DNA of 64,000 nt, taken from Bugula neritina (taxonomy: Eukaryota > Animalia > Bryozoa). Each line of letters starts with the position of its first letter. The first letter of the stretch is position 1. The notes beneath the pieces were generated by a model. The model saw only the letters and a list, made by a program, of their open reading frames with translations. It was not told where the DNA came from and ran no database searches. Of this stretch, positions 1 through 26,186 are shown in pieces. Position numbers and translations under genes: made by a program. Where the stretch lies: assembly GCA_964035545.1 (NCBI GenBank), contig OZ037766.1, positions 16,358,722 to 16,422,721 of the forward strand, in the 5' to 3' direction.

Positions 1-835
1 AAGTGTTCAGCGGTTTTTCTCAACACATTGACATTGAAATTTGACGTACTAGTACTATTATTATGATTATGATGATATTTTAGCATTGCGGTATAGTTAA
101 ACTTAATCATAATCATAATGATAATCATAATCATAATGTTATACTTATAGTTATAGTTATACTCTAAGTCTTATACTTATAGTTATAAGTATAACTGTAA
201 GTATAAGTATGACTATAAGTAGAAGTATGACATTAAGTCGCATATTTAAAGTCCTTATGATAATTATGTTATGCGCGGACATAATCGTATACTATTCGGG
301 TTCCCGTTAGTTCTAAGCGGTTATACTTATACTTATAGTCATAGTGGTAGACTAGCTCCTGGCATACACATTTTAACATCAATGCTGTGTCATTCGTATT
401 CGTGACAAACAAATTAAACTACTCTCAATACCGACAATTTGAATCATTGAAGTAGGTAAGAATACTTTAGTGTATAGTATTATTAAACCTTCAATTACTA
501 TTTAATTATAACTTTAAGTTAGATATTGAAATATTCAAATACTAATACTAATAGTCATAGTGATAGTATTACTGACAGTACCGGTACGTTAATTATTGTA
601 AATGATTGGTATCACAACACCTGCTTAGCTTGGTTTGTTGTATAAATTTAAACTAGTTTCAACTTTTTTACCAAAACCTATTTAACTGTTTAGTGTTTAG
701 CTTTAGGCAATAATTATCTTATTGTTAACTGCAAGTGCAAATCAAAATGAAAGTCAAACTCAAACTGAAAACAAATAACGAAGATTAGCTGTTACTTTAA
801 AATCAAAGTAATAACTTATAATATATCAACAGCTC
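1..835. repeat. Low-complexity tract with TNA trinucleotides phased at 6 bp; candidate promoter/first-exon region
   Basis: Runs such as tta-tag-tta-tag-tta-tac, taa-tac-taa-tag-tca-tag-tga-tag and tca-aaa-tga-aag-tca-aac-tca-aac-tga-aaa; strong + strand donor AG|GTAAGA at 455/456. Boundaries approximate. Confidence 0.7.
722..833. repeat. 112-bp direct repeat, copy 1 (copy 2 at 2699-2810)
   Basis: ttgttaactgcaagtgcaaatc...acagc aligns without gaps to 2699-2810 with about 10 substitutions. Confidence 0.9.
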
Positions 836-2517
836 TTTAGTCTTGAGCCCATACTTGGCTAGATGATTTCGTACTTCCTCAGCACCGACAAAAATCTCCT
901 GCACCACTATGTTATCAATGTAGTGGTCTGTTGCCCGACGAACCGATCGTTCATTGACAGTATCTTACCAAGAATCCAAGTCATAATTCTGGGTGCCGGT
1001 TCAGAGCGTAGTGCACCCCCTCATATTTATTGACCTGGTACTTCCACAGATCCTTGGCTATGTGAATCTGAAGATAAGCTGCCTTCAAATCCACAACTTG
1101 GAGGTTACTTTTCAACTGTCTCCACTTTCTAATTTTTTCACCACACACCGCGACCTTGTCATCTCCAGTGTGAGATTCAACGTAGTTTGTCAACTCACGG
1201 TAGTCCATGACTGGCCACACCTTGTCCTTACTTGGCTGAAACACTGCAAGCAAAGGGATAACCCCTTTAACTGGGCCCTCCCATCGTTTCAACTAACCCT
1301 TGAAGATCCAGTTCTCCAGTCCCAGTCCCACCAACCACCCGCGGACTTACCAGAGTCCGCTCTCTTCCAGTGTCAACAAGACACGAGAACCAACGGTTGT
1401 TCAGAATGGCCTGAATGTTGGGCATACTGCTACTTGTGGTAGTCCTACTAATTGCCCCAGATAGCGCCAGGCTGTTCCGCAGTACGCATGCATTGCTCAG
1501 AACCTCGCTAATCGATGAAGAGCATGGCCCTCGGCGGTTAACGCCTAAGCTGTGGTATCCATGTTGGAGGATGCGGCACTTCGAGTTGCGTCCTCCGCCT
1601 GAAAACCCGGCTGGTTACTTTCCAGCCTCACAGCCACTGCAGGTGGTTTCGGGCAGTCGTGAACCCAGTGATCGATGCCTCTGCATCGGAAGCATCCAGC
1701 TCTCTTCCGAGAAGAGTTTCTCACGGGCCGTCTGTTGGAAGAAGCCCGCCTGCTCTCGGTGCAATCCTTTACCCGGTGTGCACCCCCACACCAATAGCAA
1801 GAACTGGTACCTGGCTGCTGCTGCACTCTTCCAAAAGCAGCAGTGACTACCCCTGACTGTTGCCCAGACCTAGAACGACGTGCAACAGCCTTACACCAGA
1901 CCAAAGTCGGCCGTGTAGGCACTTTCGAGGGTTACTGCCCACTCGCAGACAGAGGCCGGCAAGCCTTCATAAAACTGAGCTTGAAAGCTCAGTTCTTTGC
2001 AGGTCATGCCGACCCGCCCACCGTACTGCTCCAAGCGGTCCAGGTACACGTCAACCGTGTCCCATCTTCCATACGGCAGGTAATAAACCTATGCCATGCT
2101 TCCTGCCTAGGCATGGAATACTCGGTCACCAAGGCCACTTTCACTACATCTCATTGGGATGCCTCGCCCCACGCATCCTGCTGTAGACGCGAGCAGCATT
2201 GCCACGCAACATGTAAATGACGATTTCTGTTGGGGCAATCTGCTCCACCTCGCAGAGTCCTTCAAACTCCCTGATCCATGCATTGGCGTCCACACTGCCA
2301 TCACCAGTAAACTATGACGTGGCTTGTCAAATTCTCGACAGGCTCAGGCCTTTAGCCTGATTGAGGATGCTAGCCAATACTCTCGCATCCAACAGAACTA
2401 GAGCTACAAGCCCAAATCTCGCAGATGATGGCCCACTAAGGTCGGATGCACCACCAATTGTCGAACTCTCCCCAAGAGAGTCCTTGCCTCCACTTTTCTC
2501 TTCTGACTGTGACATTC
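834..2517 (-). mobile_element. Decayed Gypsy-like LTR retrotransposon internal region (gag with two Zn knuckles, truncated RT)
   Basis: Gag-like AWIREFE and VDVYLDRLE segments across frameshifts; knuckles CYWCGGAHRVKDC and CFRCRGIDHWVHDC (ORF 1545-1922); RT motifs PVMDYREL and VVDLKAAYLQIHI (ORF 981-1292); YIDD box mutated to YIDN near 910-925. Confidence 0.85.
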
Positions 2518-2698
2518 CGTTCTCTACAGTCAACAAGTATGAGTAATAAACTACTCGACTGAGAACCAGAATGCACAAACTTACTAACTACTAATAAGTA
2601 ATAGTAAGAAACAGCAGTTATATTATGATTATATCACACTATTACTAACAGTAAAAAATTAATAGTAATAATAGTAATAATGATTATGCTGAAATAGC

Positions 2699-2810
2699 TT
2701 GTTAACTGCAAGTGCAAATCAAAGTGAAAGTCTAACTCAAACTAAAAACAAATAATGAAGATTAACTGTAACTTTAAAATCACGGTAATAACTTATAATA
2801 TATTGACAGC
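2699..2810. repeat. 112-bp direct repeat, copy 2
   Basis: Ungapped match to 722-833; embedded in an AT-rich TNA-phased stretch (about 2560-2810). Confidence 0.9.
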
Positions 2811-3051
2811 CCCAAGCTGCCACTCTGACCTCCAAACTGCCCCTTAGTCACTCCAATCTCCGCCCGTGATCTGCCCAGCAAATCACCGTATTCACCCAGA
2901 ATACAAAGACAAGAAAACTGACTTTGCTAAACTCTCTAATAGCACTAGCTGATAGAACCGTTCTCAGTCGAACACTGCAACTCTGAATGTCTTTGGTTTT
3001 GCAGAGGAACACGAGGAAAAGTCCTTGACCCCTGCTGTGTACCCAAGCACT

Positions 3052-5065
3052 CTATCTTGCTATGCTGCTAACGGCATCAGCATACTTACAGCCCACATCA
3101 CATTGCCCTGCCTCTGGAAATGGGCGAATTTCTTTTGAAGATACCATTGGCAATGTTTTTGAGCCTGTTGGGGTGGCATCGTCTGTTGTAAAAGTTGCGC
3201 CAGAACACCCAAGTGTTACAGCTGCAGTTGTAGGAGTGGTATGTGAGCACCTTGGAGTGTTAGCATCTAGCGTAAGAATTGCTCTGTCTGTGACATGAGA
3301 CCCCAAGAAGTCATCAGAAAAGGCATGACGATCAAAGGGTGAAATCACTGGTTTGCGAAACCCTGATGTAATATTATTCACTGTCATAGCCCTCCCAAAA
3401 CTAGCATTAAACAACTCAGCCATGTTGTATATGGGTAGTGTTTTTCCAGGATTGTTTAGCTGCCATGAATTGGAAGCATCATTGAAAAACCACTCAAGTA
3501 GACTGTAAACTGATATGTCGAGAGGTTGCGGTTTGTGCGAACTATGGGGGGGGGGGGGGAGTTAATAACACCACACTATTTTCCTTTGTCTGCTCAATTG
3601 CCTGAATAGAGATATGACTCTCAGGGTTCATGAGCAAGAGTACCGGCCTCTCTTTTGTTACTCTCGTATGCTTGATAAAATGATTTAACCTCTTAATGAA
3701 AAGCTTAGATGAAATTCAACCAGATGGATTAGTAGCACCAAGTGTCTCAGAGGGTGTGCCTGCAACCATATATTCTTTAAAATTGACCCTTAGAAAAATC
3801 ATTATTGGTGGAATAAATCTGCCAGCGGCATTTATGGCACAAACTGCAGTGGTTAATACCCCACGTTCTGCAAAAGTCACTTGGCCTACGTGCTTGGCTT
3901 TTTTGTCAGCAATAACTTTGGGTGGCTTATGCGCAGTAGTGAGTCCTGTCTCATCCATGTTCCATATGTCTCTACTACAAAAGTTATACCTACTTGGAAC
4001 TTCATCTAAGTTGTCATGAAATTTGCCTACATTTACTTTGTTGAAACTAGTACTTCTACCGAGACTAGTAGCCTCTGGTTTTCGGCATGAAAGACTTAGA
4101 TGGCGCTTGAGAAATCCACTAATCCTAACCCCTTCTGCACATTCGTTGTCATTCCAACCAGATGGATACACATAATTATTTCTTTTTGCATACTCCCAAG
4201 CCAACTGTCTGACTTGCTTTTTTTGTCAATACATGATGTTGTCTAGATGCTGTTGATATATAGTTTTTAAGCTTTAGTTCCTGATCTTTAATAAATACAG
4301 AACGATGTGCTTTTGACTTTTGAAAATCCACAACACTATCAAGCCCTTTTAACCTTGCTTCTTCAACATAACGAGTTAGTCGTTCTTGGGAATTCCAAAT
4401 CAGCAGACACCCTATTCACTGACATACCCTCTATAAGTACCATTTTTGTTGCTGTTCTCATTCCATCAGCTGATACATCCTTGCTTTCTCGCCCATTGCT
4501 CTTTTTCTAGTAAGTATGCACCATATCTCACTTTTATGACAAACTGGAAAAGATAAAAAACCTTGAATTATTGACAGGTTGAGTCTTGGAATATAATAAC
4601 TCCAATAATTGTGTTTCAGCAGAATGTTGAAGTACTTGAAAATATGTTTATATTCAACAGTTACATAGATAGTTAGCTATATGAGGCACAGTGGACAGAT
4701 GTCCACTGTGCCCCGCTTAATGATGTCCACTGTACCCCACCTTGAATTTTAACTAAATAGTGTATATAGTGAAAAGCTACAGTATTTACTGCTACTAATT
4801 CTAACAAATAGATCACAAGACTTGGTTAGCATAAGAGTTATAATCATTGAAAGTTGGAAGTTGTGAACTTACTTTAGTGGGCTAAATTTAGATTTTGATT
4901 TACCACAGCTGCTCGCACATGCTTTCAATGTTGAACACAAAGATGGTTGCATATGCTGAAGATTTGACAACTTCAAATCAGTCAAGTATCTGGAAAAATA
5001 GATATGACCACTGTGCCCCTATGCCCACTATGGCTCCCATCCCCCCCCCCCCCCCCCGTCTCCCC
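3052..5065 (-). mobile_element. Decayed pogo/Tigger-like DNA transposon (HTH + DDE_1 transposase), 5' terminus retained
   Basis: Start MVHTY*KK at 4524; GFLKRH..LSCRKPEATSLGR, IWNMDETG, GRFIPPIMIF (ORF 3716-4204); NNITSGFRK..ISPFDR (ORF 3052-3423); minus-strand end TA|GGGGAGACGGGG at 5065-5067 with repeated GGGGCACAGTGG subterminal motifs (4685-4740, 5008-5020); stops and frameshifts. Confidence 0.88.
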
Positions 5066-5369
5066 TATAATGTTAAACGTCATGCCATTGTTATGTAATA
5101 TATAATTCTATTTTGATTTAAGCATTTGTTACTTTCAAGCCTCTATATCCTTGAATGAGTGTTTGTATGTGGGTTATTAATAGCCAAATAGTGACTGAAA
5201 CAAATGCTAAGCATGAAAATTGCATGCATAAATAGATAAAAATACAATATATATATATACCTCATCCCTTTATTAAAGCTATATAAATTGAGTAATAAGT
5301 AACATTTCGTATAGAATATACATATAGTTAGTTATTGTATTCTAGGTATTCAAGTAAATGTTCCCATAA

Positions 5370-6008
5370 AAGTTTGGGGTGTCTGAAACTAGTCAGAATG
5401 GGGAAGTAGTCCATGCATTTTGTCATTGTCTGCCAGCTCTTGTTTCAGAGCAGTTATCCACTTCACCAACATAGCACCATTCTCCCCCTTATCCATACAA
5501 GTTTGGGGTGTGTGAAACCGGTCAAAATAAGGGAGTAGTCCATGCGTTTTGTCATTGTCTGCCAGCTCTTGTTTCAGAGCAGTTATCCACTTCACCAACA
5601 TAGTGCCATTCTCCCCCTTATCCATACAAGTTTGGGGTGTGTGAAACCGGTCAAAATAAGGGAGTAGTCCATGTGTTTTGTCATTGTCTGCCAGCTCTTG
5701 TTTCAGAGCAGTTATCCACTTCACCAACATAGCGCCATTCTCCCCCTTATCCATACAAGTTTGGGGTGTGTGAAACCGGTTAGAATAGGGGAGTAGTCCA
5801 TGCGTTTTGTCATTGTCTGCCAGCTCTTGTTTCAGAGCAGTTATCCACTTCACCAACATAGTGCCATTCTCCCCCTTATCCATACAAGTTTGAGGTGTGT
5901 GAAACCGGTCAGAATAGGGGAGTACTCCATGCGTTTTGTCATTGTCTGCCAGCTCTTGTTTCAGAGCAGTTATCCACTTCACCAACATAGTACCATTCTC
6001 CCCCTTAT
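5370..6008 (-). repeat. Tandem repeat, 129-bp unit, about 5 copies, open as a 43-aa repeat on the minus strand
   Basis: Unit MLVKWITALKQELADNDKTHGLLPY.DRFHTPQTCMDKGENG(T/A) in ORF 5389-5988; copies differ by a few substitutions; in-frame TAA about 65 nt upstream of the ORF start. Confidence 0.95.
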
Positions 6009-7199
6009 TTTGCTTTTTCTCCAGTTCTCGGTTTTTCTTGCTCAGAGTCTCTTACTGGCCCTGTATGAATAAGGCAGTATTTCTAAATGCAGAACTTCAT
6101 TGTAGGTTATACTTAGTGTTGAACTTGCTGATAAACTTGCTGATAGAAACTAAATAAGAAAGCAAAAGTTATATAAATGATTGCATGCATATAAATGTAG
6201 TTGAAAATATTAAAGTAATGCTCACAAAAACCATAAAAGTAAATTTATTATAAAATGATAATTCAGATAACAATATGACTAAAAGTAACCAACCTTTTGG
6301 GTCCTTCATAGATAGCGCCACTAAATAATATTGTCAAAACAGTAGATTAATAAACTAGTACAATTTTGGTTAAGAGTGCTGCCAACTGATTGTATTGAGT
6401 TTGTTAAGTGTTTATATACTCTGGTTGTTGTTACTGTACCAGGCAAAAACATATTGCATAAATGATTGTCCCTAAAAAGATACCACAATGATTGTGTCCC
6501 AAAACATCGTAAATATTCACTGGGTTGCGTCAGGGCACCAACCCAACATGTCTGAGGTAGGGCAAGACTCGCAGCTACCCCAACCACAATGCCCTGACCA
6601 CAAATCTAATAGTCAGCACAAGGTAAATGAGTAATGCTTGCTGGCGTATGTCACCTAAACATAAATAGGAAGTTAATGGGGGTCAATAGTTATTTATAGA
6701 GGGCAACACACAACCATTTACAGTGTCCATTTCATCGTTTTGCGTGGTTAGCTTTCTTTTTATGTCTTCCAGTGCTTTGATAGGGTCCCCGTTTTTGCTG
6801 AATTTCATTGCTCTTTCTTTCCATCAATCGGATTTCTGCTTCTCCTCATCCAATCGCTGCTTGAGCTCATTTACCAATAACAGTAATACTAATAACTATA
6901 AGTCCTATAGTTATTACATTGAAATAAATCACATTTGCTGGACCGAAATTCAGGCCCTGTAGAATATCAATATGAATATGACCTTAGACTTAGAGTTACT
7001 AGTAGTAGTTGATCAGCAGCAATGGCAACAGGTGTCACTATTGAACAATAAACGATGTCACTTGAAAATGAGTGTCCTGAAAAAAAGGAAAAACTTTTAT
7101 TTTGTAACATAAGTTGGATTAGAATTCCGTTGTGTGGAAAACTAATTGAATTAGCTCTTAGGGATTTTCACTAATAAGTCTCTTAAGTCTCGTTTGACT

Positions 7200-7890
7200 A
7201 TAGTTTCCAGTGACGAAAATTGAATTCTGGTGTTCGGTAACAGTTGCTTAGTTGTGACTGACTTGTAAGCTAGCATTGACCCTCTTTCGAAAATCATATT
7301 TAGAATTAGATTGTTCATCTTTGAAATGTTTTGTTATAGAATGGTTTTCCCCTCCTCTTTATGCTTAAGACAATAGGCGAAGTGCTTTCAGTGGTTTGTC
7401 ATATTTTTTAAAGAAGGTTTTTGCATAAGCTCATTAATATCTTCCATGGCAGTTTTGTTTTTTTCTAGTCCATTAAGGAAAGCATTGGTGGAAGTGGATG
7501 CTTGCATTGCAACTTTCATATCTTAAGCCGTCTGCTCGTTTGCTGCATCAGCCCAGAATTTTTTTCAAGCAATCAATCTTGCTCTTTGGTTTGGTTCTGG
7601 TATTCATCTACCCTAGTACTAAGCTTTTTTACCATCTGTTGCAGTCTACAAAGCTTCAGCATCTGTGGTAATACAGCTTTAGCTGAGTTACCTTCTATAG
7701 ACTGACAGCACTCTGTACAGTACCAGTTGACTCCTTTTTGGCCAACCTGACAATGGTGTTAGCATCTGCCACCTTGAAAGTCTTGGCATATACTTTGAAA
7801 CCAGCGGATGAACATGTCACACTCAAACCATTTAAAGTCAGTCTTTTCTTTTAGTTCCTTCCATTACCCACAGTAATGTAACATTCCTTG
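7200..7890 (-). mobile_element. Decayed PHD-finger ORF1 of a CR1/L2-type non-LTR retrotransposon
   Basis: Minus-strand peptides FKWFECDM...IVRLAK.GVNWYCTEC (PHD-like), a coiled-coil segment, NAFLNGLE and an RL.HKEEGKT-like motif; many frameshifts. Confidence 0.6.
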
Positions 7891-8889
7891 TTGTTACATG
7901 TAATGCCCGGTTGGTCAGATTGGGGTACTTTTTCAACAGACCTCCTCTGGTTTAGGGGAATCTGTGATGTGGCGCAATTCTTCATTTATGCTGTGGATCA
8001 CTGCCATTTTCGTCATTGCTGTTATTTACTAAATGATTGCCCTAAGTCATGTTGCCTGTATTATGCGTTGGGAGTAGGTAGGTGTTATCTAAGCGCTTAT
8101 TGAGTTTCTTTGCCTGAAATGTCAGTTTTTTGTCGGTCAGAGGCAAATGTTTGTGAAGAGTGTCTGTTTCCAAAAGGTTTGTTGATCTTTTTTCAAGAAA
8201 GTAATATTTTTACCATCCACTATCTTGATTATATTTATTGTTGTTTTCTTGAGGGATAAATATTAAGAATTATTTATTAGGCAATATTACAGTAGTATTG
8301 TAGTAACTTTTGGGTTATCTTTTTTAGCATTTCATTTAATGCTATTTGCAGTAGGTTTGATCTTTTTGGTAACTTTTCACTGAATGGTGTTAGAAGTTGA
8401 TGGGGCATCTTCTCAAGTTTTTTTTTCAGTATTTTCGGTGGCATAAAAATTGCAGTGGTAGAAGGTTGGAAAACACTACGCTCAGTTGATGGAATAGAAG
8501 CATTTGATAGTACAGACATGACTAGAGTATGCGAAGAAAGATCTTCCCTATGTCCCCCATCCAAGTTCTCGGAATCAATACTCAAATTGTCTTTCCAGAA
8601 ACTGCTAAATGTCTGTATTCCACAAAGGTTCACAATCACCATCATGATCATCATCGATCAAGTCACCATCACTATCTTTTGCAAAGGCTGGTTTTACATT
8701 TTCACCTGAAATTCTTGTTCTCACTTGGTTACTTTCTATGTTGAGAAGTTTGGTTGTGTCTTATGATTATAATTATAATTATAGAAAACTTCTTTTACTC
8801 TCAACTCTGGTGTTGCTAATCAGCAATCCTACAGGTATGTCATTACTGGAATTTGGTAGTTCGTCTGCTACTGGTAACAAGTGGTGTCA

Positions 8890-9450
8890 TCTTTGTAACG
8901 TTCGCTTCTTGGGAAGTTGATTGTTGTCATAGGTAGTGATGAGTGTCAATAACTTGGTGGTAGTGAATGTTGCTTTATACTTCTGTAGGCATGAACTTTT
9001 AAATGATTTGTTTTTGGAGGTCAATGTGGCGAGACCAATCTCTATTTGCATAGGTTCAGAATTCAATTTTGCTATATTGTCGCAAGTTATGTATGTTGTG
9101 TCAGACATGGAGTCTACCAAGGCGAAAACTAAGCATTCTGTTGATGGGTTTTGCTCAGTACTAGTGGATTAGTCAGCCCACCTTTTTACCTGATATGAGA
9201 TTTTGGCTGTTATCTTTTTTTAGCTGCTTTTGTGTTGTGATTGTCTGCATCAAGGCTAGCAACTGAATCAAGTAAATCAATGCAGTCTTCTAAGGCTTCT
9301 GCATCTCCCTGTTTTATTTTTGGTAGTTTTTAAATTTTTCTGGATATGCCCCTGTTGCCTTTTCTTCTTTTTCATATCTATCATTTAGTTTAACCCAAGC
9401 TGTCTTATAGGAATTTTTTGTTCTTTGCCTGTAAAAGCCTGGAATGGCCT
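8890..9450 (-). mobile_element. BEL/Pao gag and aspartic protease remnant
   Basis: SYKTAWVKLNDRYE...LPKIKQGDAEALEDCIDLL (BEL gag) followed by CLVFALVDSMSDTTYIT (BEL protease ALLDSQSDTTFI-type). Confidence 0.7.
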
Positions 9451-10279
9451 TTTAGGCTCTGACGTTTACAAACTGTCTTAGTCTACAAATATAAAGGGTG
9501 ACAAATATTGTGGTTAGAGAGAATCATTAGTTTGTAATAGGAACACAAAGGTAGTTCTGATTTGCAAGGTGGTTGCTGAGTGTGCAGCTGAGGCAGATAT
9601 TATGATTGAACAGAGATAAATTGTCCTGTGGTAACTATAAGTGATGCTGTGAATAGATTAACAGCAAGGTATGAGCAAGCAAACTAAAGAAACTGTCCTA
9701 GTAATATGTTCCATGTTACTTAAATAATCAAAATATTACAGCAGACATTAATAATTCAATTGTTACATGATGTCCACATATGTAGACATAGATATGAATG
9801 AGCAATTGAGTATGTATCTTAAAGATTTTATTTAAAATATTTGTACATGAATCAGTTTTGACTGTGGAGATTGTCTGAAAAATAAAGGGGCTCGCCTTTG
9901 TATATTTCGGCTAAACATTGAACATGTTCAAGAGCGAAAGTCAAATGCTGCTTACTTTCAAAGTGCAATTGGAAATTTAACTCTAAAAGAGTGAACTTCG
10001 GCCTAATGACACAAAGTTTTTTCTATAGAGTAGATAAATCTTCACTAATGGCCTTTAGTTAATTAGATAATTTCAAATATCAATTTATTGAAGTGGTCTG
10101 CTACAAACAAGGTGATGTACACATACGTAGAAGCTGCGCATGGATGGGTTAAATCTCTTGAAATAGTTGCAACAATTACCGATTTTGTATAAAGATGTAT
10201 GTTTTGGTAGTGCTTTTTAAATTGTCATAAATAAATTGTACTTTATGTTCATTGAAAGAGATTGAAAGGAAGTGCTCAC

Positions 10280-10630
10280 TCGACACCACACCAACTGTTG
10301 GTAGCAATTTTGCTCTAGTTGAAGCTCTTCTAGCTGGCCGCAAATGTCGAAGCTGAGAAGATAAATTTATTGCAAAATGATAGCTCTGATCTTGTTGCCC
10401 AATTCTGTCAATTTTTTTTTGTGTGTCAAACTGCTTTTAAAAAAATTGGTTCGGTGGACTTTCTCTTTATTGGCTTGGGTGTTCTTTGCAAAATCGAACC
10501 ACTCACGGTTGAGCTGCTGCTGGTTGCTGAAATATCGGAACTTAGATTTCGAGACAACTCATCTTCTGCATTGAAATTTGTTGAAATTGGATTGCATACT
10601 CTTTTTATTGTAAGTCTGAGAACTCCATGG
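10280..10630 (-). mobile_element. Possible MADF/BESS-type accessory ORF remnant of a PIF/Harbinger element
   Basis: Ser-rich linker then ELSFC...SQLRHLRPARRASTRAKL, resembling a BESS motif; weak Harbinger-nuclease-like peptides on + at about 9900-10130. Confidence 0.35.
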
Positions 10631-10899
10631 ATACATAAGTCACTTCTTGTACTAAAAGACTAAAATACTTTAGTTATAAAACAAGGGAATTTTTCATACC
10701 TGCAACACATTTTAAAAAGTTTTGATTTGAATACGGTACAAGTTTAACCAGATTTCTAGGTGCTTATATATTTCAACTGTTACTGAATCGGGAAAAAATT
10801 TATTAAACAAATTCTTTTACAAAAACTGCTCAATTATTGAGTCTCAAAATTTGACAAAAATGTTCCTGTTTTCTTCTATTGTCACTTGGTTCGTTTTTC

Positions 10900-11680
10900 A
10901 ATTTTGGTTGAATATTGAGATTTCCGCTGGTTCCAGAACTGTTCTGCTAGTTGCTGCGTCTTCCATTACATGCTTCTTGCATACAGTTCATTTTAAGAAT
11001 AATCTCCTGAAAGTGGTGCTATAGTTTTTTACTTTCCGCTATAACTGGTTTAGTTTGGGTTGAGCTCACGATTGAGAGGGGTCGGTTGTTAGCAGTTGTT
11101 GTGATTTCCGTAAAGGCTTTTCTCAAGCTTTCTGTGGTAAATCTGCAGAGGTATTTTGAGGTCTTTAAATACGATTTCTATCGTTCTGATCTGTGTTCAC
11201 ATAAACTTCATTGGTGGCTAGCTGATGGTGTGTCGGTTTTAAGTTTTACTCTTTTTACTCACTTGCTCACTTTTTTTTCAGTTTTTTTATTTCCTGGGAA
11301 CAGTTTGCTTGTTGTGTGAGCTTGATGGCGATTGTCTCCGCTTCTTGGATCTGATGTACTGTTAGTTCATTTTTTTTCAGACTTCAATTTTTCAACAATA
11401 CTTGGACATTTGCTATAATTCTGGTAAGTTGTTTCCATCAGCTGAAATTACTGATGATCTTTTTTATATATGGCTCTGCAATGCTATCTGTTACTAGGGT
11501 CGTCTGTACTTTCTTAATTTCCGGTCTGTTTTTTAACTTACCTAAAGGCATTGCCATTCTTCAATCTGTTTATGAAGGAAAGCTGGCCCTTTGTACCAGT
11601 CACCTGTTGCTAGTTGTGATGTTGAGGTACCACTTGATATAATGTCTGCTGGGTTGTTACTCACACTCTTGCACTGATAT
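10900..11680 (-). mobile_element. BEL/Pao RNase H to integrase-end remnant
   Basis: NNPADIISSG...WYKGPAFL (ORF 11542-11787), WKQLTRIIA, ELTVHQIQEAE and NNRPLS...QQLAEQFWNQ. Confidence 0.75.
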
Positions 11681-12018
11681 GTAGCAACAAAGAACAAGCA
11701 CAGCTCACCAACATTTACCGTGTAAATAAATGACTGCCCAGAGTATGGCCAAAAATATGTTTCAATATTAGTTTTGCTTGTAATCACTGTTTGTAAGAGA
11801 TGATGTTAGGAATCATTATGCACAGCATATAGGGTAGCAGATGAAATGGTTTCATAATTTTTTTACAGGTATTTTTATTTTCATTTGCGCACCATGTTGG
11901 AAAGGGATCAACTCTAATTTATGCTGCACATTTCATAACTACTACTTTCACCCAATTTTTAGCACTGCTATAATTGTCCCAAAAAGAAAGTTAAAGGACT
12001 GTTCACGTTGCCACTAGT

Positions 12019-12330
12019 GTGGCCGCTCCATCTATTTCACACTCAATTAGTAGGATGACTTTCTTTAATCTTATAGCTGACCTAATCTCTTTCAAAGAAA
12101 TGTCTGGTTTTAGCTGCAACTTTCTAGACAATGCCTTGTCCAGCAGTCTAGCCAATAGACTAGTCTTAATTATATCTTGTTGGACTGCTGCGTCAGCTCA
12201 ACTGCACTTAGCTGCTAACTCCTGCATTCTCCTACTAAACTGTTTATTAGTCTCTTTACTAGACTGTAGCTTTAAACTGAATACTTCTATCCCTGGTATG
12301 TCAGCCAAGGCATCTACCATCAACTCTTAG
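12019..12330 (-). mobile_element. Gypsy (Mag/K02A2.6-like) gag remnant
   Basis: Minus-strand RRMQELAAKC...IIKTSLLARLLDKALSRKLQLKPDISLKE. Confidence 0.6.
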
Positions 12331-12479
12331 AACAGGTAGCATCAATTTTTTATGTTTTTTATTTAAAGTTAGAAAACCTACAAGCTAAGATGATCTATCA
12401 TCCAGTGGCACTTGGTAAAACCCTTGCTCTGCATCTAGTGTATTAAAACAGCATGATCTGGCTATACAGGAGAAGTACT

Positions 12480-12620
12480 TTGACAAAAATGTTGCCTTCT
12501 TTCGGCTTGTTGGCTGCTACTAGTGGTGATAACCACTCAGTTGGCTTATTATCCTTACAAAGAATACCCTTCTACTCAAGGCTATCTAGTTCCTGTTTAT
12601 GTTTTTGTCTAAAACCTAAA
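12480..12620 (-). mobile_element. Gypsy RT N-terminal fragment
   Basis: KQELDSLE*KGILCKDNKPTEWLSPLVAANKPKEGNI, matching the ELD.LE..GI....PTEW.SP.V...K motif. Confidence 0.65.
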
Positions 12621-12749
12621 GAATTATGTTTGGCCAGCAACGCTTCAGTTTCAAAAACATTGTTTTCTGGTATTTACACACCCGTTGAAAGCCTTACCAT
12701 GTCTCTTTACTCTCTGTGCAACACTAGTTTCTGAGTGGCCTTATACAAT

Positions 12750-13250
12750 GTTATGCAACAATCCTAAATATCTACTGATGAGTAGATCTAATACTGTGAT
12801 TCCTCCAAGGCCAAGGAAAAACTATTGCTTTTCTTTTTATCTGTGATGAGCTTGTTGAGAAAATGCTCGCTAATCTTGTGCATTCTATTGGCAATAGTTT
12901 TCCTTGATCCTATAGCAGAATTGATTTCTCTGTTCTTAGTAAACAGTGTTTGTGTTGCAACCTGAATACAGCCCTTATTATTTCCCTGTGAGAGTGGAGA
13001 ATCATTGTCTTAACCAAAATGGCACTAACCCCTAAGACTGGGTTATGCATAGCGCTTTCAGATATTAGTGAATGCTGCTAAGCCACCAAACTGCCTCTCT
13101 CTCGAGCTGGCTGTTTGCGAATGATTTCCTTTTGGATATTTGGTATTGAAATCTTTTTTCTGTATGATATGGCAGTTGATATTAGCTGACTTATTCATCG
13201 CCTCTGTGTCCAAGCATGTCAGGCACATTGGTTTTTTTGGATATTTCATC
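12750..13250 (-). mobile_element. hAT (Charlie/SPIN/GTF2IRD2-like) transposase N-terminal remnant
   Basis: KPMCLTCLDTEAMNKSANINCH (BED-like; ORF 13058-13249), SRKTIANRM..IS and SLALEES (FSLALDES box) in shifted frames. Confidence 0.65.
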
Positions 13251-13543
13251 TGATTTGAAAATCAGTATAATTTTCATTGAAAAACAGCTTAACCTATTCA
13301 TTAGTTGGGTAAATCTAAAAACTAATACATACACAAATATTGTGACGTGTACACAAACACTGGATCTTCAGAATAGAGGTATGGTAGCGAATAATCAGTA
13401 TATCTATTATCTTATACCACTATAAAAGTCATAAAGAACTTTCAGTCAATCAGGGGTAATGTTCCTTGTATTAAATTATATAGAAATGGTCGCCAGTACT
13501 CGCCCAGCGAGGCGCAATTGCAATCAGTAATTGATGATAATAA

Positions 13544-14330
13544 TCATGATGCTATTACAATAAAAGTATTATATCTCTGTAACATAATTTCTTCCAAATG
13601 TAATTCAACTTGCCCATATAAGTTTTGTCCATCTGCACCATCATCGAGATGAACATTAAATGAGTTTAAAAAGTTATCACTTCCATTCACATTCATAATT
13701 TGGGCATGTATAGGCACAATTGTTGGTTTGTCAGGAAGTTCAATGTTGAAAGTTTCAAGAGGTTCCCTAACCCCATTTGAGTTGTACAAATGAATGCTCT
13801 CAGCAACACGCTAAAGAGGTGAAGTTTCCTTCTGTTCTAATTGGATGATTATTATGACATGCTTTCAAGTTATCTAAAACCTGATTAATCCTAGGTATGT
13901 AAACAAAGTGCATGGCTGCAATACAAAGTGGGTTGTCAATGTTTAGCTTTCCAATTCTTTTTAGAGCATAAAACATTCTGGCATATCTTGCACGGATGTG
14001 AGTGTTGATTTCTCTATTAAATCGTTCAACTCCTTGATTGTCAACTGATGATCCAAGAATAACAGGATTTTTATTAACATCGTTTGTCCGTCCTACCATT
14101 GCTTTTCATACAAGCTGGTTTTCACCACCATAATCACTCTGTACTTTAGCTGGAACATATCCAACTTCCTCACAAGCCATTACAAAATGTTCATACACTA
14201 TAGTGGCACATTTATTATTGCTACATTTCAAGAATGTACGCAGCCTAAAATACATATCGATTGCACAGTAAACGACTATTCCCCAACGAATAGGTTTTAT
14301 CCCGGATAAACGCATCCCAGTTAGACGCTC
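13544..14330 (-). mobile_element. Integrase-core DDE transposase remnant of the eukaryotic IS3EU-like type
   Basis: KPIRWGIVVYCAIDMY.R...FLKCSNNK, VQSDYGGEN, GSSVDNQGVERFNREI, HFVYIPRIN and HNNHPIRTEGN across ORFs 14106-14366, 13800-14099 and 13544-13789. Confidence 0.8.
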
Positions 14331-14929
14331 GGCTAAATTTCTCACCAGGATTGCAGCTGTTGTCACTAAAGTTTTTGGAAGCTGATCAGTAAATATTAAA
14401 AGCTATGCCTGGAGGACCTATTTGGAAGGAACACATTGACCAACTCTGTCTAAGACATACCAATGCTGAAGACTCTGAATCTCTTGAGGAAATACATACA
14501 TGTCCCTTTTATGACCAGAGAGGAAAACTCACAGCAATATCCTACACCTGCAGCCTCACTACATAGAAGAAGCAACCCCCGCTTACCCGATGGTGATGAG
14601 TATGATCGGGACAATCCAAGATCAGCACGACTCTGGAACCAATATCAACGCTAACGTTCAGGAGAACTTTAAGCTAGTCGGGAGGTGTTCGAACTTTACA
14701 TAAGCTGGGAAGGTTTTCTCCTAATGCATGAAAACTTTTCACATATCTCAGCTATATTATGCTTTTTCTACATTCAATATAGCTGCTACACAAAAGCTAA
14801 CCTTTTTGACTAGTATAAAAACTCTGCATTTTCACTTATCCACACTTGTGTCTCACACTTGTAACTGGTAACTTATAACTCATGATATAACCCTGCTTTT
14901 TGTGTTATCCTTGATTCTTAGAACTTTCA

Positions 14930-15430
14930 CTGCCAAGATCTCATCGCAGATGAATTCCATGAACAGCTTGAAAGGAAGATAGCCGTCATAGGTTTTTTCA
15001 TTTTTGGTATCTGGTACTTCCACTTAGTTTTTAGCCAACTAGGTGACTTCTCAGGTATTTCTTCTTATATTCTGGTTCATCCAAGCTGTTTAGATGTGGT
15101 GAAGCTTGTTTTGCACTGTTATGATGGGTTAAAAGAATCAGCAAATTGTTGAAGTGCGAGACCATTGGGGTTTCCACTTTTTGGCCACTCTTAAAGTTTT
15201 TTTTAAAGTTCTTTTAAAAATTGTCTTGCAGCATTTTATGAGTTTACTGTGTCATTTATCAAAAAACTTTATATACATCGATGTGCATTTTCATCAATAA
15301 ACCTTTTCAGCATCCTCATTCGTCTAGTGCTTTTAGTAGTAGCTTCAGATACTAAAATGATCAAAACATGTTTACCAATCCTTGAGTTTCATTGGATCAC
15401 CTTTAAAGATAGATGGCTCTACAATGGTCC
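14930..15430 (-). mobile_element. BEL/Pao gag remnant (second copy)
   Basis: EPSIFKGDPMKLKDW...LQQFADSF...PSWLKTKW...PFKLFMEFICDE in shifted frames. Confidence 0.7.
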
Positions 15431-16639
15431 TTTTTGTCATATGCATAGATTCTGTGATAGAGCTAGCTAACTGTTTCATACTACTAAGCAGTGGTGGTGG
15501 TGTATTATGTTGCTGTTCATCATTTGTCTGAAATTCACTTTAGTGTGTTCGAGGTATTGCATTTGTTGTACTGGTAGTAAAAAGATGATCCCTGGGAGTT
15601 GCGTATTCATGCTCAGATCTAGGAGTTGAGCTAGTAGACACTATATACTCTTCTACATATTTGTCTATATCTAATCTATGTAATTCGCTACAGTACCTCT
15701 TTACTTCACCTACACTTGATAGCAGCTCCCGTCCATTTGTCTGTATCTCACTGTGCGGTTGTTTATGTGAGGAAAACTGAGCCTTAATTCCCATTGGTAA
15801 AAAAGGCTTGACTTTAGCTAAAAAAGCTTCACTCCCTTTGGCGAGTAAATATACACTTTTACTGGACAGGCTTCACTTCCTTTAGCGAGTACAAACTTCA
15901 CTATAGCATTTCTGCGACTTTTAAGTTGAATTTGCCTTACTGATGTATTCGCTTTATTTAGTATTTGAAACACCAACGTGGAGTCTAAAAAATAGACAAC
16001 ATATGCTTATGCTACACTAGTAAAAACTCAACTGTTGAAACTCATATCCACAACAAAAATTTATGCTAATGACATTATTGGTAATATTTATAACTAAAAT
16101 TGATATTATTGATAACTAGATTGATATTTGTTACTAAAAACATGCTACAAATAGAGTCAAGTTGATTTAAGTATGCAAATCGACAAGGTATTCAAATTAT
16201 TTCATTTAAAAAAAATTCTTTCAGTTCTCTTATTTTCTTAAAATGCCAACTGTTTGCTTGTGTAACTAAGATTAATATAACTTTATCTGCTTGTGTAACT
16301 TTAAATTAAAATGTAACTTTATAATAACGACTAACCTGTCGGCTTCCGCTCTAACGTTGTTGTTGATTCAACTATTTTTCCACGGGCAAGTTACAAAACA
16401 CAATAGTGCGAGTAATTCATTAGACCCGGGTCAACTAAACCAATCAAATCTCACCGAACAGCCTAGTAGCTAGGCACGCATCTGTACGGGATGCCAAGGA
16501 ACTGCGACCCCATAACATCAGCACCGCACAGCGGGTCAGCCAACCATAAAAATACACTGCAGCGCATAGTGCTTTTGACAATTTTTCCAATCATTTTATA
16601 GCACTCCTAATCCTCCGTCTTCGATGTCCGCATGAATAA

Positions 16640-18212
16640 ACATGCTTGGACATTGCTCTTTCACCTTAACCCTTACCCGATCAATGGACCATATATGTCC
16701 CTTCAAGCGACACTATTTGTCATCTGTTTGCTGTAAATAGCTTGAAATTAAGTAAAAACTTTTCAACATTTTAGCTGGATTCGCGACAAACCCTGCTTCA
16801 CCTAGCTCTCTGACTAACAGCTCTAAATTGACCTTTAGACCTTTTTTTATTTTCTGCAAGCAAAATTATATCATTAGCAAAAGCCATGTACGAGACTAAT
16901 TCTCCATCAATCTTATAACCTATCCTAGCGTTCAGCTTCTGAACACAGAGATCTATGACAGCATTGAAAAGGTGCTCTGGCATCGGATCTCCTTGCTTGA
17001 TACATCTTCTTGATGAAATCCTATGAGACGAGTCATTGGCCAGAATCAACCTTGTGCTACTCATTTTATAAAGTTTTGAGTAGTACTCAATCAATTGTTC
17101 TGGAATACATATTCTCTTGCACGCGATCTATAGTGCTCATGACCAACACTGTCAAATGCTTTCCTCATATTTCAGGAATTCGAGGTGAAGGTTACGGAAT
17201 TCTGATTTTGCACTGCTGTTGCATTTCTGCAGAAGAATAGAGTTAAAATACAACCCATCCCTTCGCCGAAGCCCTTTCTGACAGTGGAAGATTCGTAGTG
17301 TTGTTCCAATCTCTCCCGCCTTCAGAATACCATGATGGAGCCTGAAAAGTACAGACTTCACTGTAATGAGCTTAAACTGGCTCGGATTAACAGTACCTGG
17401 GGACTTCGGTATTAAAGTTGTCCTCTCACATGTCCTGGATGGCACAGAGCTGCAATATAACCGAAGGTTGAAATAAGAGGTGAGCTTCTTGGCGTCTTTC
17501 AACATTCTCCACGTCAGGTCATTCGGCTCCGGTGCCCCTTTACTCTTCCGAGAGAGGTATTTTAAAACCTCCTCCTTCGAGATGGGATCCATGAGGCAAT
17601 CTAACCTAGTGTGGAGATCGTCATTTTTTGCAACATCAGCTCGAGATTCTCTTTCCAGCAGTTCAGTCTAGTAGTCTCTGGCACCTACAGGAATATTCTC
17701 TCTAATTTCAAGGCCATTCAGTAGCATGCGGTTGGGATCCTTGCAGAACATTCTCTGTGCTGTTTTAAAGAAACGTTATCTGCAATGACTTGGCAGGTTT
17801 AAAAATCTTCCCCAGTTGTGTTGGCACCTTTTAAACGTGTTCTCTAAACTTCTCCTGAAATCTCCTAAAAATAAAAGGAACATCGATATTTTTTTGCTGA
17901 TCTCATCTAGCTCTCCATTGGCTAAAGGAGTTTTTGGGACGATAACTGATGGTGTTTCCAGAATGTTCTCTTGCCTTTTGAGTTTTTCAGCGAGTAGCTC
18001 AGCATATTTCTCTTCTTATTCCTTTGACCCTTGATGGATTCCAGCGAGCACCCAGAAAAGCTCCTATGGAGTTCTTGATTAATAAACCATATTCGTAACT
18101 GTCTTACCCCCTCCTTTGCCAACCTAACAATTTTTGCTGTTGCCATGTTGTCCAGCTCACTTGCTACTGCTGCTAGCTTTACCTGAACGTTATGCGTTAT
18201 TAGTTTCAGCAA
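16640..18212 (-). mobile_element. Decayed R2-clade non-LTR retrotransposon (Myb-like domain + RT)
   Basis: FINQELHRSFSGCSLESIKGQR (R2 Myb-like), GAPEP, RTTLIPK, IKQGDPMPEHLFN and MAFANDIILLAE (FADD box mutated) in ORFs 17922-18212, 17152-17592 and 16798-17094; endonuclease domain not seen. Confidence 0.82.
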
Positions 18213-18329
18213 CTATACATTGGCCAGAAACTTCTCTTGAGTCATGATCAGCCAGTGTTCCTAAGTCTACACATTCTGTGAATAATTAAGAAACCAATGA
18301 ATTTATTAGAATTGATGGTGATTGGCTGG

Positions 18330-18391
18330 GGCCTGATTAAAACAGTAGAAGAGCCTGATGTGGCCCACAGGTCGCCATTTGCCCATTCCCG
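18330..18391 (-). mobile_element. Isolated hAT-type terminal sequence
   Basis: Minus strand CGGGAATGGGCAAATGGCGACCTGTGGGCCACATCAGGC resembles the CAGGGGTGGGCAAAC..CGGCCCGCGGGCCA ends of Charlie-group hATs. Confidence 0.45.
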
Positions 18392-18460
18392 CAGTAGATT
18401 ATAATTAGTTGTCAAATGAACGCGAGCAATTAGTAGTTAATATGGTGAATCACTTTATAA

Positions 18461-19113
18461 TGGGGCAGACAGACTACAGTTGAAACTGAACTGTGAGCGC
18501 ATTCAGTGTTCGAACGCTAAAATTTTGAGTTTATTGATTATCTAATCGCTCATTGGTAGATAAGCTCTGATTGGTTGATTGCTTCAACTAATTTCATGTG
18601 CTACTAGCTAGCATTACTATTTGATATAGTTGATTTGGTTCTTCCAAAACTATATTATTTTACTAAATAATTTAAACTATGTATGCAAATAATAATAATG
18701 TATGAAAATAGGTATTTAGATAAACTTGACCGAATGTTATTAGTATATTTGGTTCATTATGCTAGTGAATGCTATTGAATAAAGCTAGTAAGTCTCGTTA
18801 AATGATGTGTTGGTAATTTTGAATAATTGAAGCTAGTAAGTTATAATAAAAAAATAGTAAATCTTTTTGAATTACGCAAGTAAATCTTATTAAATTATGC
18901 TAGTGAATCCCAATAAGTCTCGTTAAATTTTATTATTAATTGCTGTGGGTATAGCAGAAACTGAGTAACAGCATTTCTATTGGTTAAAAGCTTACTGAGG
19001 AGGTTAGGCAGTATGTATAAACATCAAAAATAAGGACATGATGTTGAGGCTATTCGGGAGCAGCTTGAAAAATTTGTTCACAATTCAGTTTCAACTGTAG
19101 TCTGTCTGCTTCA
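18461..19113. mobile_element. Non-autonomous DNA transposon (MITE), about 650 bp with 35-bp TIRs
   Basis: gcagacagactacagttgaaactgaactgtga (18465-18496) is the near-perfect inverse of tcacaattcagtttcaactgtagtctgtctgc (19078-19109); AT-rich interior with repeated ttatgctagtgaat. TSD unclear. Confidence 0.8.
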
Positions 19114-19586
19114 TAATACTTTTAATTTTGTTCAGCATTTTCAAAATACTGATTTTAGCCTTAGTAGCTAGTATTACTGATTGTATGTTGTAGCTAGAGC
19201 TGCTTTTGGGTTTACTATGGGTAGTTAGCTAATTGTTTGGTTCATTTGCTTTCCTTCATTGGAGAAAAGTGATTTCATAGATTGTTAAAGCATTCGCACT
19301 ATGCCATGTGTCTTTTGGTGTTTTTTTTTGGTATTCTGATGAATAAAGTGCTATGCGTAATCGCTAATTAAATCCACGACAATCTGAACTTCATTGAGCC
19401 AGAAATATTACATAGGTAGCTGCTACAAAGTTATGCTGTAGGCCTACCTATTTTTAGGGGCTTTTCGTATTTCATATATTCATTGCAAGGAAAATATTCT
19501 GATTGCTCTGGTGCAACTGTGTTGAAAAATTTTTTGCTAAATATAGTCATTTGATTTTAAAATACAATTGTTTTTTAGACTTGAAA

Positions 19587-22284
19587 ATGATATCTCTTCA
19601 ACAAATATGTGTAGACTTCATCTCTCAGAATATTTGTTGTGTAGAATCTTTGAATGATACTCCTGAACTTATTGGTCAGATGTTAGCTGAAAGCATCACT
19701 GGTTGTGGAAATAGCACAGCAGAACAAAGGGCTCGTGTAATGATCCGACTCTATTACTTGTACTGTTTACTTCTTGTATAATACATTTGGGATTTTTTTA
19801 ACATTGTCTGATATAGTATAAATGTAAAGTTTAGGTTTCTGTCTTGCATGGTTCCTGTTACTAAGATGTCTCTTGGCCGTTGATTAGCAACATAACTCTA
19901 GTATCCTAAAACATATACCTTACCGGTTAAAACCTGTACTGTTTACCTTCACAGCTATGAGTTGTCTGTCTATAGTTTGAAATCTTTCTGTTGCTTAACA
20001 CTTTTCTTAGTAATTGAAAAATTTAAACTTTTTATACATCCCAATACAGCTTTGAGTATATTTTAAAACACTGTCCTAAACCAAAGAGAAATTTAAAAAA
20101 TGTTTTCTAAACATTCCTTAATTTTGCACCGTGAATTAAATTCCAATCCCTATCTCATAGGATTAATATTTAAATACACCTACTTTTATGTTTGATTATT
20201 TAATGAATTGCAAACTTTGAAATTGTATACAACAGTTACATGTTGAAAAGCTTTTAACATATTTGATTTTTAGGTAGATGAGTGTGTACTTTTATTTACA
20301 AAGGCCTATGGAGATGTTGCATTACACAGTCTTAATCTAGATTCTAGCTATGAGTTAGTTCTTCACGAGAATGGCACAGCCAATAAAATGTGCCAGGTGT
20401 TGAGAGAAAGTGTTTTCAATATCATCTCATTTGATCAACTCAAACAGCTTGATGTTAGCTTTTGCACTGCATTCAGCTCAACGAAATGGCTAGATGTTCT
20501 TGGGCAGTGCAGGTAAGAGCAATGATGTACCGGCTTCATCATAAACATTGTGTGAAAGTATGAAATATGGCTGATTTTATACAAGTCTATAAGCACCCAT
20601 TAGCTGTACATTAGCTACATTGGTATTGTTGAATATATTGTTTGTATTTCAACAGCTGCAACCTCTAAAATTAAGGGAGCCTGTGGTACAGCTAACCTAT
20701 GTGCTCAAATCTTGGCAAGCTCACCAGTGATGCTAGGAAATACTTTTGGTCATAATTGCTCCTATACTGCATCTTTAAACCATATCATGTCAACATGGAA
20801 CCCATGCTCAAACGCTTAGATTATGATAATTGTGCATATCTTATTCTAAATTAATTAGATACAGCATTTATTGACATATGAAAGCACAACTTCTTATTTT
20901 GCAATGCTTTTAAGCCATTAAACTGAAAACAACCAGGGAAAAGTCATTTTTCTAGAAATACATGTTGTGTTGATAGCCTGACTCACCTGTCTCTGAAGGG
21001 AGTTGGTCTTGATGATACCAGTCTTATATATCTGACCACCTGCGCTGCTGTTCGTAAATCAGGACTCCACTCCCTGGAATATTTAAATTTAAGCAGTTGA
21101 GTATTTTATGCCAATTATATACTTACACTGTCATGAATATCATAATTTATCTAGAAATAAGTTACTTTATTGTGTGTTCAATATATAAATCTAAAAATTG
21201 CTTTTGGCGTTAAACTTTCAAATGTTTCAGACAATAATCTATCCCCTAAGTGTTTGAAGAGAGTTTACAGATTTAACAAACTCAGAGTTTGTGTTTTGTC
21301 TAATACTTTAATAAGGGTAAGTTTTTTGTGTTTATTATCTGTAAGTTATGATTGTTCCATGACTTTGCACAGTGGTGTTTTATTGCAGGAAACTAACTTA
21401 AAATATATTCATTCTATTTTCATACTTATACCTTCCTCTTAGTTAGGAATACAGATCAAATACTTCACTAAAGCATAACTTTTACTCCAATTTTTTTCCT
21501 AAACAAAGTGCTTTTAAATTTTGGTTTTAAATTTGTCTCATGTTTTTGTGTTAATATTTCTAAAACCTGTTAACACCATCTCGGAATTAATTCAGTATAT
21601 TCATGTTTTTACTGACCAAACATTCACTCAACACTAATTATATGTTGTTATTGTAGCCGTGTGATGTTGATCCTGGTATATGGAGTGTATCAGAAGACTC
21701 ATCTCACATATATAATATAAAAGGAAGGGGTTGGTTAGCAGACTATATAGAAACCATGTGCGGGAAGTCTAAAGGGCTGGGATTTTATCAACAAAGAACT
21801 AACAGGCCTCATTGTAAGCAAATATCTTATGTGTCGTATTGTCTTTTTAGCAAAAACTATTTTGATTAAGTTTTCAAATTGCTAGATGGGTGTATTTTAA
21901 ATAATATTAGATCGTCGCTTGTGAGAGACCTTGTTAATTTCAAACCATTATGAAGCCTAAAATGTGCAGAATTTCAATGTTTCTTGCAATTACGTCACTT
22001 TAGAGTTATGGGCACATGGTATAGATTATGGATTAGTGTCTAGGTTTGGTTAAATATTGTGCTGTCGGGTGCTATAGTTGGCATTCTAAAAGTTTCTTTT
22101 TAGTTTTATAATTCAATATAAAACTTTGATGTGTTACTATTTTTTAGCTGGTTCAACGATGATTATGTTAAAGAAGAGTCGTAAGAGAAATATCTCTGTA
22201 GAAGCTGCGAAATTATCTCAACATTTTACTGAAAGTTCTAAAAAGAAGCAAGCTGACTCTGATATATTCAATTTATATTCATAG
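19587..22284 (+). CDS. LRRC42: Leucine-rich repeat-containing protein 42 homologue, about 295 aa, 6 coding exons (19587-19736, 20274-20512, 20977-21095, 21231-21316, 21657-21813, 22148-22284)
   Basis: GT-AG junctions with consistent phases; peptides SLQQICVDFISQNICCVESL, FTKAYGDVAL, LKQLDVSFC, SLTHLSLKGVGLDD, GLHSLEYLNLS, KGRGW and C-terminal DIFNLYS* parallel LRRC42. An acceptor at 19578/19579 implies an upstream exon. Confidence 0.85.
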
Positions 22285-26136: not shown

Positions 26137-26167
26137 CTTATTTCTCTCAGCAACTAGCTATTCGTAT

Positions 26168-26186
26168 AATCCCACCGCTGCCACCA
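26168..26186 (-). promoter_or_regulatory. Primer-binding site complementary to the tRNA-Leu 3' end
   Basis: Minus strand TGGTGGCAGCGGTGGGATT, 1 nt inside the 5' LTR; complement of ...AATCCCACCGCTGCCA-CCA. Confidence 0.88.

Follow-up and report, generated by a model that had tools for sequence, protein, structure and literature searches.

The question raised by this locus is why the remnants of many unrelated transposons, lying side by side in one intergenic stretch of a bryozoan genome, should nearly all read on the same strand. The stretch belongs to a segment of 64,000 nucleotides (nt) from Bugula neritina (GenBank assembly GCA_964035545.1, 216 Mb in size; contig OZ037766.1, here C2, i.e. 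C2:16358722-16422721), which was analysed as a whole and is called the window below; positions without a contig name are counted from its first letter. Near its left end, between 722 and 19118 and thus at C2:16359443-16377839, 18.4 kb of intergenic, single-copy DNA are made up of old broken transposon pieces, referred to here as the pile. These represent at least nine lineages from all major classes—a long terminal repeat (LTR) retrotransposon (LTR-a), two to four BEL/Pao elements, two long interspersed nuclear elements (LINEs) and DNA transposons of the pogo, piggyBac, hAT and rva_4-type DDE kinds—and at least 11–13 independent insertions. As a tentative first choice among several explanations, we propose that the pile may be one of many small unistrand source loci for PIWI-interacting RNAs (piRNAs) in this bryozoan genome.

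The polarity itself is strong. Among the typed independent pieces, ten lie firmly and two weakly on the minus strand, against a single one on the plus strand (two-sided binomial p = 0.012 for 10:1 and 0.0034 for 12:1), and the bias spans every class; the DNA transposons, i.e. pogo, piggyBac, hAT and the rva_4 type, share it. As a strand control, all open reading frames (ORFs) of at least 45 amino acids (aa) in 834-18391 were compared with Pfam on both strands. The 77 minus-strand ORFs contained rva_4, RVT_1, zf-CCHC and rve and, weakly, DUF1759 and BrkDBD; the 72 plus-strand ORFs contained no transposon family. The direct Pfam matches of the window's own ORFs, i.e. rva_4 at 13803-14402 (E = 6e-19 and 7.5e-15 on the ORFs 13803-14105 and 14109-14402), RVT_1 at 16801-17127 and zf-CCHC at 1548-1931, are all on the minus strand. 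Seven repeat pieces carry no assigned strand and stand outside the tally (6049-6724, 9483-9659, 10245-10659, 13286-13395, 13390-13535, 18197-18403 and 18456-19118). In base composition, the plus strand of the pile is T-rich (A 0.283, T 0.332) and the left flank has no T excess; this T-richness, which does not extend beyond the pile, follows from the orientation of the pieces.

Much of this had been anticipated in an original prediction, which described a dense multi-lineage mosaic of transposon remnants, a near one-strand (minus) arrangement of their coding sequences and a T-rich plus strand. All three are borne out, the mosaic by the typing of the pieces and the arrangement by 10–12 minus-strand pieces versus one on the plus strand, with Pfam families on the minus strand only. 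That everything should read minus, with a weak Harbinger-like peptide at 9.9-10.1 kb as the sole exception, is correct as to the minus excess only: the position of this peptide falls within a piggyBac element on the minus strand, in its 5' portion, and the actual plus-strand piece, a Gypsy fragment at 14348-14892, had been missed.

Applied to stop-to-stop ORFs of the window itself, Pfam is too insensitive for pogo, BEL, hAT and the LINE with a PHD finger. The pieces were typed through 14 better-preserved copies from the same genome (the loci with L numbers), whose long ORFs were assigned with Pfam and the ESM Atlas and which were mapped back onto the window by blastn and tblastn; the search of the own genome scores only the best candidates, so that closer copies may exist. 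The pieces match different loci piece by piece, have junctions that recur at no other locus and show no internal duplication, and thus represent independent events. Local duplication as a source of the polarity is ruled out, since the only internal repeats of the pile are an LTR pair and a 129-bp array. A mobile composite is ruled out as well, the junctions of the pile occurring at no other locus. This bears on the idea of a mutational bias, according to which elements inserted preferentially in one orientation with respect to replication or chromatin, or the fragments were brought in together by a composite mobile unit. Co-orientation in several unrelated patches of the genome (see below) would agree with such a bias, as would the mild replication-strand preference that is known for LINE insertion. 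Against it stand the single-copy nature of the mosaic, whose junctions recur nowhere and which is hence no mobile composite, and the consideration that we know of no mechanism that would orient DDE transposons, LTR elements and LINEs alike, and we regard a mutational origin of the polarity as very improbable.

Could the pile be an ordinary intergenic transposon nest that is polarized by chance and has no functional meaning? It was picked among approximately 3,365 windows of the genome, and a p of about 0.003-0.012 alone is not remarkable in a search of this extent, from which several such piles are to be expected. The original prediction, which gave a chance figure of 0.008-0.0005, was right about the bias but ignored the number of windows scanned, and the figure now becomes 0.012-0.0034. 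Also in line with a chance nest, the seven strand-less pieces could dilute the bias, and constraint is not in evidence, the DNA of another individual being 2–4% different in the pile. However, three further patches of transposons, which had been fetched only as holders of copies of the pile's elements and not for their polarity, show the same behaviour: in L014 (C8:5166500-5175500) an LTR element, a LINE, a BEL gag and a P-element-like TNP all read plus; in L013 (C2:16965000-16973000) a CCHC gag, BEL, a DUF7869-type ORF and a Harbinger helix-turn-helix (HTH), i.e. three to four families, all read plus; and in L007 (C1:12465000-12473500) piggyBac and a DUF7869-type ORF both read minus. That all three patches should be fully co-oriented has a chance of about 1/64, and the 128 opposite-strand ORFs in eight loci contained no transposon family. 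Since patches fetched for other reasons are also co-oriented, chance is disfavoured; pure chance is an unlikely cause of the polarity, and the nest without function retains a minor share of our belief.

The main rival is host transcription, i.e. a transposon graveyard that was polarized by a long 5' intron, or by upstream or read-through transcription, of the plus-strand gene on the right-hand side of the pile. Sense insertions bring poly(A) and splice signals and would be removed by selection, with antisense insertions left behind. This gene, which we take to encode a leucine-rich-repeat (LRR)-like protein, shows exon-like ORFs that extend from the ATG at 19588 as far as about 22.3 kb and in which Pfam found no family. 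Between 0.7 and 26.6 kb, all typed transposons but one are antisense to it as the only host gene there (LRR, plus strand, 19.6-22.3 kb), and this includes a young minus-strand LTR element downstream of it (23.5-26.5 kb). The ATG is preceded, at a distance of 8 nt, by a polypyrimidine-AG site that resembles a splice acceptor; it may therefore belong to exon 2, with a 5' exon of the gene further upstream, possibly beyond the pile. The age and neutral decay of the pieces, too, would fit passive accumulation. Retroelements inside or near genes are known from mammalian genomes to be biased towards antisense orientation, and the pile resembles this situation in that transposons on both sides of the neighbouring gene are antisense to it. 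The mammalian bias, however, is moderate and class-specific, and intron orientation biases are in general mild (about 55–70%) and mainly concern LINE and LTR elements, whereas the bias here is near-total (more than 90%), includes LTR elements, LINEs and four DNA-transposon lineages, and affects a pile located upstream of a start codon. Moreover, neither an exon nor a transcript was found upstream for the LRR gene, a search for gene records with an ORF of the pile gave no match, a first intron of 18 kb would be unusual in a genome of 216 Mb, and the plus-strand poly(A) hexamers in the pile are not depleted (AATAAA, 17 versus 14 expected; ATTAAA, 13 versus 10.5 expected). We rank polarization by host transcription second, as a serious alternative of fairly low probability.

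To our knowledge, a one-strand piRNA cluster is the only kind of locus in which near-total and class-independent transposon polarity occurs in intergenic DNA. It is on this ground, together with the presence of Piwi-domain genes in this genome and the PIWI1 and PIWI2 reported for Bryozoa (PMC11114477), that we rank a piRNA source locus first. Genes with a Piwi domain (PF02171) are found at seven loci at least, a count in which the PIWI and AGO clades are not separated. Four of the copies lie in tandem on the plus strand within 43 kb (C2:12874319-12917145), with further ones at C4:9.39 Mb, at C2:7.08 Mb and on C216.

In a source locus of this kind, a transcript made by RNA polymerase II would start to the left of approximately 722, cross the pile from left to right on the plus strand and be cut into piRNAs of 24-32 nt that are antisense to the transposons; antisense insertions would be kept and sense insertions lost. 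It is thus a plus-strand transcript, its promoter and its processing into piRNAs that we infer from the arrangement of the pieces. The position of the pile supports this reading, as it is intergenic and lies between the side with the LRR and ion-channel genes and a transposon-poor left flank. It is possible, although a further step away from the data, that the old debris of this genome is generally kept in many small intergenic piles, which would be polarized as unistrand or two-armed piRNA source loci and archive every class in antisense.

A number of findings weigh against a piRNA source, beginning with the seven pieces without a strand and the undepleted hexamers already mentioned. Identity to the nearest copy found is 86–93% for the LTR element, pogo, the solo-LTR-like repeat and the rva_4 element, and 15–47% of the 26-mers in these four families have at most one mismatch to their nearest copies. 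For the other nine aligned fragments, identity is 69–81%. In seven of the 13 aligned fragments, all of them in this lower range, essentially no 26-mer comes that close, so that these seven could not guide silencing of the copies in question. Read as an ‘antisense catalogue’ of the genome's transposons, the pile is for the most part outdated. No young insertion is present within it, and a young non-autonomous LTR element (23492-26487, minus strand, LTRs 98% identical) sits about 4 kb outside. At the left edge, no promoter was apparent as a CpG-undepleted patch at p<1e-4 in a scan of 84 kb. A search of sequencing runs for this DNA gave one match, to genomic DNA of another individual, and no RNA run; no bryozoan small-RNA library was found.

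Comparison with flamenco, the model for the original prediction, points in the same direction. The likeness lies in a non-coding stretch outside genes that is packed with fragments overwhelmingly on one strand, to which a single transcript would be antisense. The flam-like loci, however, span 227-1,085 kb, are enriched in endogenous retroviruses (ERVs) of the Gypsy family and derive their polarity from Gypsy only (PMC10643416); for flamenco and flam-like clusters, the promoter has been mapped and the piRNAs from one strand validated (PMC10643416, PMC10495008). The pile measures 18.4 kb and mixes all classes; its bias is not driven by Gypsy, as its single Gypsy pol piece has the opposite (sense) orientation; and its fragments are old. 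Its size and its Gypsy content place it outside the flamenco family in the Drosophila sense. Closer in scale are the uni- and bidirectional piRNA clusters of other animals, e.g. those of the proTRAC type in mollusc and annelid surveys, which are defined by piRNA density, a bias for uridine in first position (1U) and strand asymmetry of the reads (PMC6342924, PMC8915122). Their size range of tens of kb, their intergenic position and a one-strand output would fit the pile.

The condition of the pieces is that of an ordinary nested transposon graveyard: they are old, truncated, partly nested (BEL in piggyBac) and neutrally decaying, without constraint between individuals and single-copy as a whole. 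In 13 of 15 alignments, the differences to the nearest copies lack codon periodicity, as neutral decay would produce; exceptions are the LINE, where it is strong (p = 1.6e-11), and the BEL piece at 8810-9157, where it is weak (p = 0.04). For the untyped pieces, this periodicity pointed to no strand. Over 14500-20400, the DNA of a second individual has an even depth of about 110–130 and differs by 2–4% in the pile and by about 1% in the first LRR exon; even depth and differences of this size show that 14.5-20.4 kb are single-copy and unconstrained. The second individual also has small indels, e.g. a 38-letter replacement at 15202-15208. What sets the pile apart from an ordinary nest is its polarization, which would not be expected there.

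A one-strand ‘transposon trap’ has so far been best documented in ovarian somatic cells of Drosophila. If the pile is a piRNA source, the same design would exist in a phylum without piRNA-cluster data, in a compact form covering DNA transposons as well as retroelements, a counterpart among lophotrochozoans to the flamenco-type clusters, without their restriction to Gypsy and their length of hundreds of kb, and piRNA loci in non-model animals might become predictable from sequence. If the piles are not piRNA sources, their co-orientation would still need an explanation, with pervasive one-strand transcription or an orientation bias as candidates.

Table 1. Transposon pieces and repeats of the pile, and the first coding exon to its right, in window coordinates (+, plus strand; -, minus strand; dot, no strand).
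Feature	Position	Strand	Remarks
LTR retrotransposon, gag with CCHC and start of pol	722-3099	-	5' LTR 2699-3099, 3' LTR stub 722-833
pogo/Tigger-type DNA transposon, transposase C-terminus truncated	3103-5046	-	88% identity to L002
Tandem repeat, 129 bp x5 (43 codons per unit)	5364-6008	.	Tandem Repeats Finder (TRF) score 1157, 95% matches
High-copy repeat of ~680 bp, probably solo LTR	6049-6724	.	>30 copies, 80-90% identity
Gypsy LTR fragment	6933-7257	-	7113-7257 matches both LTRs of an intact Gypsy in L005, 73-76% identity
LINE ORF1 with PHD finger	7266-7932	-	tblastn E 7e-32 to 9e-33 vs L006 PHD ORF
piggyBac 5' part, left piece	8343-8763	-	collinear with L007:3805-4228; strand inferred from collinearity
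BEL/Pao fragment: gag DUF1759 region and downstream piece, 650-bp deletion	8791-9482	-	74-76% identity to L008
Repeat piece	9483-9659	.	
piggyBac 5' part, right piece (same element as 8343-8763)	9744-10152	-	matches L007:4411-4733
Low-copy repeat, untyped	10245-10659	.	77% identity to L010:3453-3925; second copy on C1
Weak BEL/Pao pol-like remnant	11575-11769	-	tblastn E 1.5e-4, 31% identity to L008 Peptidase_A17 ORF; no Pfam match
hAT (Buster/FAM200/ZBED5-type) transposase remnant	12797-13058	-	77% identity to L011:3533-3805
Repeat piece	13286-13395	.	
Repeat piece	13390-13535	.	
rva_4-type DDE transposase or integrase	13537-14402	-	86% identity to L004
Gypsy integrase C-terminus and partial LTR, sole plus-strand piece	14348-14892	+	L012:4075-4609 reversed, 74% identity
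Weak BEL/Pao gag-like remnant	15360-15455	-	tblastn E 4e-5 vs L008 gag ORF
BEL/Pao pol, reverse transcriptase (RT) region, second BEL family	15904-16596	-	L013:3630-4269 reversed, 72% identity; L013 BEL reads plus
LINE: N-terminal ORF part and partial RT	16770-18131	-	window Pfam RVT_1 E 2.7e-4
High-copy repeat of ~200 bp	18197-18403	.	many copies, 81-85% identity
Miniature inverted-repeat transposable element (MITE), ~660 bp, 48-nt terminal inverted repeats	18456-19118	.	inverted ends 85% complementary; right edge of pile
First coding exon, right-hand gene	19588-19760	+	read directly from sequence; acceptor-like site 8 nt upstream of ATG

The individual assignments behind table 1 corrected several details of the earlier picture. 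What had been taken for an RT preceding gag at the left edge is a single minus-strand LTR element whose parts follow the native order and from which two internal segments, of about 510 bp and 2.35 kb, have been deleted. It is collinear with L001 at 85–86% identity (tblastn E = 1e-40 to 1e-125), its two LTR pieces are 91% alike, and the ORFs of L001 match Retrotrans_gag, zf-CCHC, RVT_1, RVT_3 and rve in Pfam. In L001, a core histone ORF (Pfam Histone, E = 1e-22; L001:8653-9072, i.e. C9 at about 4298150-4298570) adjoins the intact LTR retrotransposon on the same strand. The neighbouring pogo element is typed by minus-strand tblastn matches (E = 1e-100 to 1e-116) to L002, whose ORFs carry DDE_1 and HTH_Tnp_Tc5. 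An ORF at 5392-6051 is a spurious 220-aa frame held open by the 129-bp repeat with its five units, and its Pfam matches comprise zero matched stretches. What had been described as a Harbinger accessory ORF (17.3-18.1 kb) belongs, as its N-terminal part, to the LINE from which the RT also comes (E = 1e-57 to 1e-59). Of the labels R2 and IS3EU-like in the original prediction, the former corresponds to this LINE at 16770-18131 and the latter to the rva_4-type element at 13537-14402.

Further to the right of the tandem repeat, several copies of the repeat at 6049-6724 are paired on the same strand about 4.4 kb apart, e.g. at C7:2371021 and C7:2375431. The intact Gypsy in L005 has ORFs with RVT_1, RNase H and rve on the minus strand of that locus, and in L006 the PHD ORF, an apurinic (APE) endonuclease and RVT_1 are all on one strand. 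The orientation of piggyBac follows L007, where 3805-4228 lies directly upstream of a same-strand ORF with DDE_Tnp_1_7 (E = 1.3e-10); plus-strand ORFs within 9744-10152 gave no Pfam family. This element is split by the nested BEL/Pao at 8791-9482 plus an untyped repeat; the BEL/Pao fragment matches L008 with E = 2e-12 to 3e-16 in tblastn, and ORFs of L008 contain DUF1759 and Peptidase_A17. The repeat at 10245-10659 has no Pfam match and no codon periodicity. Next to the hAT match, a minus-strand ORF of L011 was grouped with DUF4371 / FAM200-ZBED5 RNase-like clusters at a score of 0.94.

The single plus-strand piece, Gypsy at 14348-14892, is supported by plus-strand tblastn matches (E = 7e-14 to 9e-15) to an L012 ORF that lies directly downstream of the rve and RNase H ORFs of L012 on the same strand; its portion 14683-14892 is high-copy and coincides with a spike in read depth. 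The LINE at 16770-18131 matches two contiguous ORFs of L014 (tblastn E = 1e-56 to 1e-59), the second of which has RVT_1 with E = 5e-24. The MITE at the right edge immediately precedes the LRR gene and is high-copy in part, with high depth at 18834-19030.

Around the pile, the surroundings are of a different composition. The left side, over 20 kb beyond the window, has zero matches to the transposon library assembled here, and GC content is 0.385 in the pile versus 0.32-0.34 in the left flank. About 17.5 kb to the left of the window start lies a minus-strand exon that we take to be HSPA12-like. On the other side, a minus-strand ion-channel gene (Pfam Ion_trans), presumably HCN-like, occupies about 35-48 kb of the window. 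Neither Rfam nor a tRNA scan gave a match in the window, and hence no orientation of the short high-copy repeats as short interspersed nuclear elements (SINEs). The observed/expected ratio of CpG is about 0.45 throughout the window and the 20 kb of left flank, in genes, flanks and pile alike, which suggests broad germline methylation; gene starts in this region are not marked by CpG-rich patches. A CpG-rich promoter at the left edge of the pile, suggested by a first look, was lost in the 84-kb scan, in which the young LTRs (23.4-24.3 kb and 26.2-26.8 kb) form the only CpG-undepleted patches. The young LTR element at 23492-26487 has a 308-aa gag-like ORF (25234-26157, minus strand) and a GC content of about 57%. 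Finally, open frames of 160–359 aa arise from long simple or tandem repeats at 40660-41250 and 60340-61415, one of the two being a (TG/CA)-rich array within an intron of the ion-channel gene and the other a minisatellite with a Tyr/Ile-rich frame.

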